A DNA stretch of 64,000 nt from Zygnema circumcarinatum SAG 698-1b (Eukaryota; Plantae; Zygnematophyceae), in contig CM074809.1 in NCBI GenBank assembly GCA_037447605.1, positions 3,400,689-3,464,688 of the forward strand, in the 5' to 3' direction. The notes under the pieces are model-generated. The model was not told the DNA's origin. It saw nothing but the letters and a program-made list of their open reading frames with translations, and did no database searches. The first letter of the stretch is position 1; each line of letters begins with the position of its first letter. Shown here piece by piece: positions 33,751 through 37,315 of the stretch. Position numbers and translations under genes: made by a program.

Positions 33751-36700
33751 TCAGCCTCCCCCCTGTCTCCCATACTGAATGACGAGAGGTTTTCCTTTGA
33801 GCTTGAACCCGTTCACACGTGACAAGGCCTTCTCAGCAAGCGCAATACCTGCCCAAAAAAACCCCAACAATTGAATCTCTACGATTCATGTGTGAACGCA
33901 TTTACTGCATCGTTATTATCAAATCTACTACCCCAATCGGCCACTTGCTTTTTAGAAAGTCAAATCAAGAGAGATAACACCTGACAAAACTTAAAAGTCA
34001 AACCAAGGGAATGAAAGTCTCAGAATAGGCTTGAGAGAAACCCTGTTGTCCCATTCAATATTAGAATCATGTACAACATGCAAAGTTCAAAAAATGAAAG
34101 ATCAGATTCGCCGGCTTACTTGGGAAGGTAATGAAGGCTTGCCCCTTCATTCTGCCCTTTTGCATGAGCCGATAAATCAAAGGGGGCCCCTCCTCCTCTT
34201 GAAAGCGGAAGAAGAGAGCTACAAGGTCCTCCTCTCTCACATCGGAGGCTAAGTTTTTCAAATAAAGGGTCTTCACAAAAAACACCCAAAGCTGCAATTA
34301 GCAAAACAAGAATCATGACAGAAAGAAAACACAAAGAAGAATAGTCAACCGAGTACCGGCGAGTCGAAAGAAGGATCAATAAGACCAAGTGGGTTTTAAA
34401 CAAGAGGGTTTTGGGTTTCTAAGAATGCTGAATATTCTAGGCTTCTTAGGAATGTAAAAAAATCTCAGGATTTTTAGGGTAAGAACGAACTTTTGATTTC
34501 TCCCCTGCCTCATAGTCGCTGAATTTGCCGCCAAGGAGAGTCCGAATCTCCTCCACCGAGAGGCAGTTTGTCGCAATCTCTTCATCCGATATTGTGGGTA
34601 TAACAATAGCTTCCTTACTCCCATCTTCTTCTCCTTTCTCTCCTCCTCCTCCTCCTCCCTCTCCTCCTCCCTTCCCTCTCCCTCCTCCTGTCTCTCCTCC
34701 CTCTCCCCTCTCTCCAGCTCCTGTCTTTCCTCCCTCGCCACTCTCTCGCTCTCCCTCTCCCTCTCCTCTCTCTCCTCCTTCTGCCACATGAGCTTCAGGA
34801 TCAGCAGCAGTGCCCCCCATGGCTCCGAGGAAGGAGGCCATGTCCAGAAGAGGCGGAGCTCTCTCCTTGAAGACATCCGCGGCTTTGCGTTCCGGCTCCG
34901 TATTGGCAGCACTCCTTGCCGCATCCTGCAGGAGGGAGGGAGGGAGAGAGGGGGAGGGAGAGGGAGAGGAGGGGAGGGAGAGAGAGACGGAAAGAAGAAG
35001 GGGAGGGGAGAGAGGGAGAGGAGGGAGAGGGGGAGAGAGGGGAGGGAGAGGGGGAGAGAGGGGAGGGAGAGGGAGAGGAGAGGGGAGAGGGAGAGGGAGA
35101 GGGAGAGGGGGAGAGAGGGAGAGGGGAGGGAGAGGGGGAGAGAGAGGGGAGGGAGAGAGGGAGGAGAGGGGGAGAGAGGGGGAGGAGAGGGGGAGAGAGA
35201 GGGGGAGGGAGAGGGGGAGAGAGAGGGGGAGGGAGGGGAGAGAGAGACGGAAAGAAGAAGGGGGAGGGGAGAGAGGGAGACGGGAGAGAGGGGAGGGGAA
35301 AGAGGAGAGAAAACGTGTGACAGAAATGTATAGTGAGAGAGGGAGAAAAGAGGGAAGGCGAGAGGAGTGGTCGCAACTAGAGGGATTTATGCTTTGTTTT
35401 GTTCTACAAAACAGCAGAAGAGAACATTGGAAGTGATACAGATGAACATTTACAAGTAGAACACAAACTTTTGAATGAATCCAAAAAAGAGAGAGAATAT
35501 CGAAAATCGTACCAAGGGTGTCCCGTGTTTTGGGCGGAGCACATTTTCCACATGTTCTTCAAAAGGCTTCCTCCTCCCAACACCTGCTACCCCAAGCAGA
35601 CCTTCAAATTCTCAAGGCTTTCCGGGGGTTTAGGGTTTCTTTGAGCTCCATTGCTTTCTTCAAAAGCTGAAGCACTACTTCCTCAAACCTCTTCATGCTT
35701 CTCCTATTTTGAAGCCTATTTTTCTTGTTCGTTGGAGCATTAAAACAGTTGAAACTTTTACAGATGAGGGTTTTGTTGTTGAGCAAGCACCTGCAAATGA
35801 CAAGTGAGCTATGCCTTGGAGATGCCCTCCCCTTCCCTGCAAGAGAGATGCTTCCAACTGCGAAGCATGTCTTCCAGAACATGAAGGAAAGGCAGAGCCC
35901 CCCTCTGCTTGAATGTCATCATTGCCTTCAATTTCAAGTAGTTCCGAGTCTTGTTCATGCTCCTCTCCCCGGTGTTTGAACCGATGAACTTCATGTGCCG
36001 AAGCAAGTTTCCGCTTGCGAACCGTCTAAACCGCGGGAGAGAGGGAGGAGGAAGGGAGGGAGGAGGGAGGAGGGAGGAGGGGGGAGGGAGGAGGGGGGAG
36101 GGNNNNNNNNNNAGGGGGGATGGGGGAGGGAGGGAGGAGGGGGGAGGGAGGAGGGAGGAGGGAGGAGGGAGGAGGGAGGAGGGGAGGAGGGAGGAGGGAG
36201 GAGGGAGGGGGGGGTCTCTTTAGGGTTTTGAAATTTCTTCGGGTCACGCGACAGAACGAGAATTTAAGACAATCTGAGGGCTCTTATTCTAGTTTCATCA
36301 TGATTGCTGATTTTTAGAATATTTTAGGGCTAAGAAAATAAGTGAGAGGTCTGTAAGAGTTTAAATAGACGTGTCTAGCCGTACTCTTGAAGCTGCATTT
36401 CCAGAGTTAGTGTTTGACGCGAAATCGAGAAATGAACTGAATATTTGTCAGGAATAACTTCAAAAGCATCATTCAAACTCACAGAATCTTGATGCGAGAT
36501 TTCTCCTCCACTATTATCAGCTTCAGGAACTCCATCACGCGTCCTTCCACTGAAAGTTGCATTCATACACAGAAAAATGATCAAAAGAATACAACGGCAT
36601 TTGCCCTTCCTTAATTTCATCTATTTCCCTTGTCTACGTTCACGCATCATGAACTTATGCACCTACTCCTACACCAATCAATTTTGATGTTAACCTTCAA

Positions 36701-37315
36701 ATTTCCCTTCAAGAGTTGCTGCAGCCAAGCTGCCATGCAAAGCAGATTCAAAGCTCCCTTACCGAATGCCGTCTTTCTTCTCCGCCTTGTCTCTCTCTCC
36801 ATCGGAACTCCTCCCTCCCTCCGCTTCTCTCACTGCAGCTTCATGTTGTCGGAACTGCTCTAAAGTCAACACTCCCGCAGAGCCCCTGCTGCCAACCTCC
36901 GGAAGCGTCCTCCGAGCCCGAGTGAAGTCCACCTGCTCAGCCCTGCCATGGCCAGGTTGCTTATTTCAAGGAGAGAACAAACCTGCATTCCGAGACAAAG
37001 AGTATAAAAAGGAGCATGAAACTGACTCCTGCTTCAACCAGCAGTGCAGAAAATAGGAATTTTGTAAGGAAAGATGTGGAGACAAGGGAGGGAGTGGGAA
37101 TTTGACCTCTGTAAAGATGTAGAGAGCTGCTTTTGCAGGAGTTCCTTCAGTTTGGCTTCAGCATGCTGGAAAAGAGATTCATCCATGGCTTCCGGAGCCG
37201 CGCGATGCGGTCCTGCACGGGAGAAAGAGCTGCTCCTGTAGAGTTGAGGCTCATTGTTAGCAGCCATGGCTTCCTCTCCATACTCCCAAGACTGCATGCC
37301 GTCGCCTCTTTCCAT
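33751..37315 (-). CDS. RBM41: RBM41-like RRM protein (paralogue of U11/U12-65K/RNPC3)
   Basis: N-terminal AEAKLKELLQKQLSTS and AGVLTLEQF. C-terminal DEEIATNCLSVEEIR..FSDYEAGEKSK|TLYLKNLASDVREEDLVALFFRFQEEEGPPLIYRLMQKGRMKGQAFITFP|SIALAEKALSRVNGFKLKGKPLVIQYGR. Confident exons are 37107-37315, 36763-36942, ~34489-34927, 34120-34270 and 33751-33848. Middle exons (35490-36030) are uncertain and there is an N-gap at 36103-36112. Confidence 0.8.
34930..35340. repeat. ~410-bp homopurine/homopyrimidine (GGA/GA) tract in an RBM41 intron
   Basis: Almost exclusively G/A on the + strand. Confidence 0.9.

Follow-up and report, generated by a model that had tools for sequence, protein, structure and literature searches.

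Which of two closely related minor-spliceosome proteins is encoded near the middle of a 64,000-nucleotide stretch of DNA from the zygnematophyte alga Zygnema circumcarinatum SAG 698-1b? This stretch (contig CM074809.1, positions 3,400,689 to 3,464,688; hereafter the window, whose own numbering is used throughout) carries on its minus strand, at positions 33751-37315, a gene whose predicted product ends in an RNA recognition motif (RRM). The candidates are RBM41 and U11/U12-65K (RNPC3), which, according to Vosseberg et al. 2023 (PMC9887622), are sister paralogues whose orthologous groups both date to the last eukaryotic common ancestor. The original prediction, which was made by inspection of the sequence, named the gene as an orthologue of RBM41. 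From the comparisons described below, the gene is very probably this genome's RBM41 orthologue, and the prediction is borne out by RRM scores, by profile and profile-profile comparisons, by the lack of an N-terminal RRM and by a phylogenetic tree, all of which agree.

RBM41 or RNPC3

The predicted gene has eight coding exons (E1 through E8), and the searches, profiles and tree rows used in this study consist of single exons or of a homologue, P0002, that serves as a proxy for the whole protein. P0002 is the closest full-length relative (431 amino acids), is encoded by uninterrupted 2.3-kb transcript contigs from runs SRR8128904-7, and aligns collinearly with the window in seven tblastn pieces. 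Its pairwise alignment matches every exon of the window gene, with identities of 72-73% in the RRM and of about 45-50% in the N-terminal exons.

Comparisons with proteins of known structure place the RRM with RBM41. When E7, which encodes the first two thirds of this domain, is searched against PDB, the chains of human RBM41 (2cpx_A and 9xu3_y) score 65.6 bits (expectation value, E, of 2e-17) and 63 bits, respectively, whereas chains of RNPC3/RBM40 score about 35.6-35.7 bits and require a four-residue insertion. The same preference is evident with P0002, which yields 124.5 bits against RBM41 versus 71.4 bits against RNPC3. In the alignment of P0002 with human RBM41 (9xu3_y), klkellnkqlsts stands opposite qlksllqhqldts, and ssgvlslaqf stands opposite aagtmtlsqf. 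This alignment, along with the guide-RNA target sequences in the supplement of Norppa et al. 2024 (PMC11039992), confirms the human motifs that the original prediction had cited. Moreover, human Y312, Q352 and F354 are matched in the alignment of E7 by Y (in LYLKNL), Q and F (both in KGQAFITF). When 1.84 billion representative proteins were scanned with E7 by HMMER, 274 matches were obtained at E<=1e-3, and most of the full-length ones are 360-480 amino acids long and have the matching part close to the C-terminus, in the layout of RBM41. The nearest relatives of the gene are streptophytes.

An RRM by itself could belong to a generic RRM protein whose N-terminal likeness to RBM41 arose by chance. 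This explanation might be favored by the fact that phmmer searches of PDB with E1 and E2 alone give no RBM41 match, and by the fact that Pfam holds no model for the N-terminal part and finds only RRM_1 in E7 (27.8 bits). The E1 and E2 motifs are too short for phmmer against PDB, and family profiles were therefore needed. A profile built from 11 green-lineage relatives (the green-family profile) was searched against 2706 six-frame pieces of the window, and it matches E1, E2, E4, E6, E7 and E8 collinearly with E values from 9e-6 to 2e-29, the latter for E7. All six matches stay significant when P0002 is excluded from the profile. Within the N-terminal part, the matches to E1, E2 and E4 (E 9e-6 to 1e-10) fall in the correct order. 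Furthermore, an hhalign comparison of green N-termini with those of 17 named animal RBM41 proteins, from which the RRM and its helical extension had been removed, gave a probability of 96.9% and an E of 1.3e-10 over 225 columns, whereas the negative control, in which green N-termini were compared with RNPC3 N-termini, gave 0.2% and an E of 0.32. The profile matches in the window are far beyond chance, and a coincidental N-terminal likeness is hardly conceivable. An ESM Atlas search with E1 returned nothing usable, and weak Pfam matches to CENPU and ACP on other reading frames were set aside as noise.

A more specific alternative is that the gene is an RNPC3 orthologue whose N-terminal RRM exon was missed, either because it lies in an assembly gap or because it lies upstream. 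The two paralogues indeed have C-terminal RRMs that are close to each other, as evident from the scores of 67 bits for E7 and 30 bits for E8 with an RNPC3 profile. However, with this profile, which was built from 19 proteins, no N-terminal RRM was detected in the minus-strand region from 33 to 42 kb, which covers the gene and the sequence upstream, and the original prediction had likewise seen no such domain. Both hallmarks of 65K, the N-terminal RRM and the proline-rich region that binds 59K, are absent at the locus, and the N-terminal exons that are present fit the RBM41 domain and not RNPC3. The N-terminal RRM of this RNPC3 profile has its only match in an unrelated plus-strand open reading frame (ORF) at 15984-16226. 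The E of this piece is 2e-4 with that domain and about 1e-3 with RBM41 profiles, and it probably represents an exon from a different RRM protein gene, unrelated to this one.

The assembly gap, at 36103-36112, had been singled out by the original prediction as a place where an RRM exon might hide. It is located inside intron 3 (36482-36026, minus strand), within a sense-strand pyrimidine tract of the form (CCTCCCT)n that flanks the gap on either side and stops just short of the E4 acceptor. The nearest coding bases are 77 nucleotides downstream (E4) and 370 nucleotides upstream (E3), and no reading frame runs across the gap. In P0002, the matches to E2 and E4 are separated by 20 residues (123-142), and this space is occupied by the 22 codons of E3. 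Therefore, a hidden exon in the gap, such as one encoding an RRM, is neither needed nor accommodated.

A maximum-likelihood tree, which the original prediction had proposed as a test, separates the paralogues as well. It was built from the extension-plus-RRM region with 58 rows, comprising 55 proteins and three separate partial exon rows from the window, and it supersedes an earlier, quick tree of 126 rows that was poorly resolved. The 17 RNPC3 proteins are split from all RBM41-type proteins with support of 100/98, and the three window rows are on the RBM41 side. There, E8 and P0002 are sisters (99/84), and the branch that unites them with E7 has support of 87/82. Given the tree, the N-terminal domain and the position of the gap, an RNPC3 gene with a missed exon is highly unlikely.

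Several points weigh against the assignment to RBM41, or against parts of it. The RNPC3 set in the tree has no green-lineage members. On the RRM core, the scores of the animal RBM41 profile and of the RNPC3 profile are nearly alike (76 versus 67 bits), and for this reason much weight is carried by the N-terminal domain. Within that domain, E1 is not significant against an animal-only profile (E 0.89), such that its link to animal proteins runs via the green-family profile. E3 and E5 depend on phase consistency together with weak similarity. The sole hint of transcription and of the exon junctions is a run guessed to be RNA, in which 0.36 of the words sampled from a 3851-nucleotide stretch were found, compared with a coding-sequence share of 0.375. 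Finally, the RNA binding and the DHX8 contact that are considered below come from human data alone.

Exon structure and intactness of the gene

As predicted from splice motifs located on a three-frame reading of the minus strand, the gene is complete and intact, with eight coding exons and a product of 481 amino acids. It extends from an ATG at 37315 to a TGA at 33753-33751, which is the span originally predicted, and every peptide block that had been quoted for it is present there on the minus strand. The exons total 1446 nucleotides, corresponding to 481 codons plus the stop. All seven introns are of the GT-AG type, none of the seven donors has a U12-type appearance, the junction phases (2, 2, 0, 1, 0, 0, 1) agree throughout, and the frame closes.

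The first four exons (all coordinates in this section are on the minus strand, and slashes mark splice junctions) carry most of the N-terminal domain. E1 (37315-37107) includes the start codon and the N-terminal block AEAKLKELLQKQLSTSLQ, contains LKELLQKQLSTS, and ends at the donor AG/GTCAAA in phase 2; it matches the green-family hidden Markov model (HMM) with an E of 9e-6 and residues 8-64 of P0002 with an identity of 27/59. E2 (36942-36763; acceptor ...GGCAG/G, donor CG/GTAAGG, phase 2) encodes the block EQVDF...GSAGVLTLEQFRQ, in which AGVLTLEQF is found, and has an E of 1.4e-9 with the same HMM and an identity of 29/58 with P0002 residues 67-122. E3 (36549-36483; acceptor TTTCAG/T, donor TCT/GTGAGT) is a short, variable linker of 22 whole codons and is the least certain of the exons. 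It shows a weak match to P0002 residues 126-133, and its frame is the sole one that keeps the phases from E2 through E4 consistent. An alternative E3 frame (…VMEFLKLIIVEEKSRIKIL) was rejected because it breaks these phases. E4 (36025-35791; acceptor TTTAG/ACG, donor G/GTGCTT, phase 1) encodes VRKRK...GRHASQLEASLLQGRGGHLQGIAHLSFA, which forms the conserved block at the center of the RBM41 N-terminal domain, with an E of 1e-10 against the green-family HMM, a tblastn score with P0002 of 65 bits (E 9e-14), and an identity of 38/77.

E5 (35583-35513; donor TTG/GTACGA, phase 0) encodes GVGRRKPFEEHVENVLRPKHGTPL and is identical to P0002 residues 218-237 at 10/22 positions. E6 (34925-34491) begins with a conserved block (...PERKAADVFKERAPPLLDMASFL), continues through a Gly/Glu-rich low-complexity linker, and closes with the helical extension in front of the RRM (ISDEEIATNCLSVEEIRTLLGGKFSDYEAGEKSK), where the pattern DEEI..LSVEEIR..F.DYEAGE is found. 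Its E with the green-family HMM is 6e-17, and tblastn with P0002 matches residues 238-283 and 312-345. The extension also matches the animal RBM41 HMM (E 6e-5), and it aligns with P0002 residues 313-344, which in turn align with human residues 274-308. E7 (34270-34120) encodes the first two thirds of the RRM, LYLKNL...RFQEEEGPP...GRMKGQAFITFP, with RNP2 (LYLKNL), the RFQEEEGPP loop, RNP1 (KGQAFITF) and the Tyr/Gln/Phe triad. The last third of the domain (IALAEKALSRVNGFKLKGKPLVIQYGRQGGG), with ALSRVNGFKLKGKPLVIQYG, is provided by E8 (33848-33751), which ends in the TGA stop codon and matches the green-family HMM with an E of 5e-10.

Introns 5 and 3 of this gene are made up to a large extent of (GGGAGA)n and (GGGAGG)n repeats, as read on the plus strand (at 34930-35310 and 36040-36215, respectively), which create very long pyrimidine tracts before the acceptors. 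The Gly/Glu linker of E6 is an in-frame version of the same type of repeat.

These features bear on the possibility that the locus is a pseudogene, an unexpressed copy or a chimera joined across the gap, such that the 481-residue product is not made as modeled. The length of the gap is an estimate, E3 is weakly supported, and the Gly/Glu tract of E6 is unusually long and of the same GA-repeat kind as the introns. Against this possibility stand the eight exons with no stop codon or frameshift, the canonical splice sites with matching phases, and the conserved residues that are retained throughout. In addition, the gap is flanked by consecutive parts of one gene that have the same order and orientation and that are embedded in the same repeat, which favors continuity, and the share of words recovered in the guessed RNA run is equal to the exon share. 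We therefore regard a defective or chimeric locus as improbable, and an intact RBM41 gene as the better description.

Minor-spliceosome signals, distribution and surroundings

The original prediction had also pointed to an AT-AC intron in the window as a sign that the minor spliceosome is active. The signals expected of a U12-type intron are present at 1970-2131 on the plus strand, with the donor ATATCCTTT and a branch site, CCTTAAC, at about 2108-2114, near the terminal 3′ AC. These signals make a minor spliceosome in this genome plausible, and they count in favor of the RBM41 assignment. An Rfam scan of the window returned no match, small nuclear RNA (snRNA) genes included. With regard to the protein components, the gene confirms that this genome's minor-spliceosome set extends past intron recognition.

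A second expectation, that RBM41 might be rare or lost in land plants, does not hold for mosses, lycophytes, ferns and gymnosperms, and is correct at most for flowering plants. NCBI lists a protein of the lycophyte Selaginella moellendorffii as ‘RNA-binding protein 41’ and one of the moss Physcomitrium patens (XP_024365074) as ‘RNA-binding protein 41-like’, and both are relatives of the window gene. Further orthologues are found in Diphasiastrum (KAJ7569802), Ginkgo (Gb_26417), Cryptomeria (LOC131056780), Taxus, Adiantum (two species) and Psilotum, and in the zygnematophyte algae Mesotaenium (ME000308S05225) and Spirogloea (SM000013S26453). Outside of plants, an orthologue is present in the amoebozoan Ceratiomyxa. 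It belongs to a non-animal, non-plant RBM41-type clade (P0191, P0202, P0134, P0109 and P0204; support 99/96) that groups with animal RBM41, and the N-termini of this clade fit the green profile as well as the animal one.

Among the named matches, whether from word-seeded searches or from the best 150 matches, no angiosperm RBM41 was found. This result fits the reported absence of the gene from Arabidopsis thaliana, because of which the Selaginella moellendorffii orthologue was used instead (Vosseberg et al. 2023, PMC9887622), and a loss across angiosperms is suggested. A profile of RBM41 over 167 eukaryotes showed that its losses are more frequent than those of other minor-spliceosome proteins (Norppa et al. 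2024, PMC11039992). In one possible scenario, which we offer tentatively, at somewhat below an even chance, the gene was retained in streptophyte algae, mosses, lycophytes, ferns and gymnosperms and disappeared in the angiosperm stem. If true, flowering plants recycle the minor spliceosome without RBM41, and this alga or Physcomitrium could serve as a natural green model in which to study the function of the protein. We found no experimental study of any green-lineage RBM41 in the literature searched. Novelty is low, as had been foreseen should wide documentation in plants come to light: such documentation exists, and it diminishes the novelty of the gene and not its identity. The gene is one more streptophyte-alga member of a family that has been traced to the last eukaryotic common ancestor, and its significance reaches little beyond annotation, except for the comparison of the N-terminal domain between animals and the green lineage.

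The sequence surrounding the gene is rich in repeats. Directly upstream of the start codon, at 37540-38080, is an array of about 500 base pairs of CCCTAA/CCTAAC-like hexamers, which yields artefactual PNPNPN and RVRVRV ORFs. Microsatellites of the ACATGCAT type are located at 38.8-39.3 kb, and the next recognizable gene upstream of RBM41 is marked by an ORF with a BTB-like motif on the opposite strand (42001-42384, plus). On the other side, in the region 29030-31110, near-identical ORFs recur at a distance of about 990 base pairs (e.g. 29465-29767 and the last part of 29872-30759) and are separated by several N gaps; this is either a duplication in tandem or an artefact of the assembly.

Proposed function and comparison with known systems

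Human RBM41 provides the experimental basis for considering what the algal protein might do. The mutations Q352A and F354A abolish U12/U6atac binding by human RBM41 in human cells, and the conserved N-terminal region is required for association with DHX8 (Norppa et al. 2024, NAR, PMC11039992). The human protein has been found with excised U12-type lariats and with the U12 mono-snRNP (a small nuclear ribonucleoprotein), and it was therefore placed in post-splicing disassembly and recycling (Norppa et al. 2024, PMC11039992). In contrast, 65K bridges U11 and U12 via its N-terminal half (Norppa et al. 2024, PMC11039992).

By analogy, we infer that the window protein works as human RBM41 does, including putative U12/U6atac binding. 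Its N-terminal domain, which has neither an RRM nor a 59K-binding part, would link it to the DHX8/Prp22 helicase. Such a link would place the protein after catalysis, where it may help to release and recycle the minor spliceosome (U12 mono-snRNP), rather than in the bridging of U11 and U12 when introns are recognized.

The architecture shared with human RBM41 (PDB 2CPX for the RRM and 9XU3 chain y) consists of an N-terminal helical domain, a helical extension and a single C-terminal RRM. Common blocks include LK.LL..QL.TS, AG..TL.QF and R.E.E.E..L..G in the N-terminal domain, DEEI..N.LS.EEIR in the extension, and the RFQE..GPP loop and YQF triad in the RRM, and identity over the RRM core exon is about 65-70%. 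The predicted algal protein is longer (481 versus 413 amino acids) and carries the long Gly/Glu-rich linker in E6, whereas the region that corresponds to the human LGL..EI motif is short and divergent.

The RBM41-like proteins of the green lineage are collinear with the window gene over their full length and have the same conserved blocks, to which plant-typical blocks common to the green members can be added (GRH..LEASLL.G...L..I.HLS; RKP; ..VF...AP..LD...[FY]L). The window gene and P0002 lack a KG[LF]S..EI motif that is present in other green members and in animals, and among green-lineage relatives the low-complexity linker is specific to the window gene.

U11/U12-65K (also called RBM40; PDB 3EGN and 5OBN) shares with the window protein the YQF triad and the type of C-terminal RRM with its helical extension, and in humans it binds the same 3′ stem-loops of U12 and U6atac as RBM41. 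Unlike the window protein, 65K has an N-terminal RRM, a proline-rich 59K-binding part with which U11 and U12 are bridged, and a longer loop before RNP1. The window protein has instead the DHX8-linked N-terminal domain of RBM41, which is not similar to the N-terminus of 65K, and the fact that this domain is common to animals and the green lineage argues for an ancient post-splicing role of RBM41.

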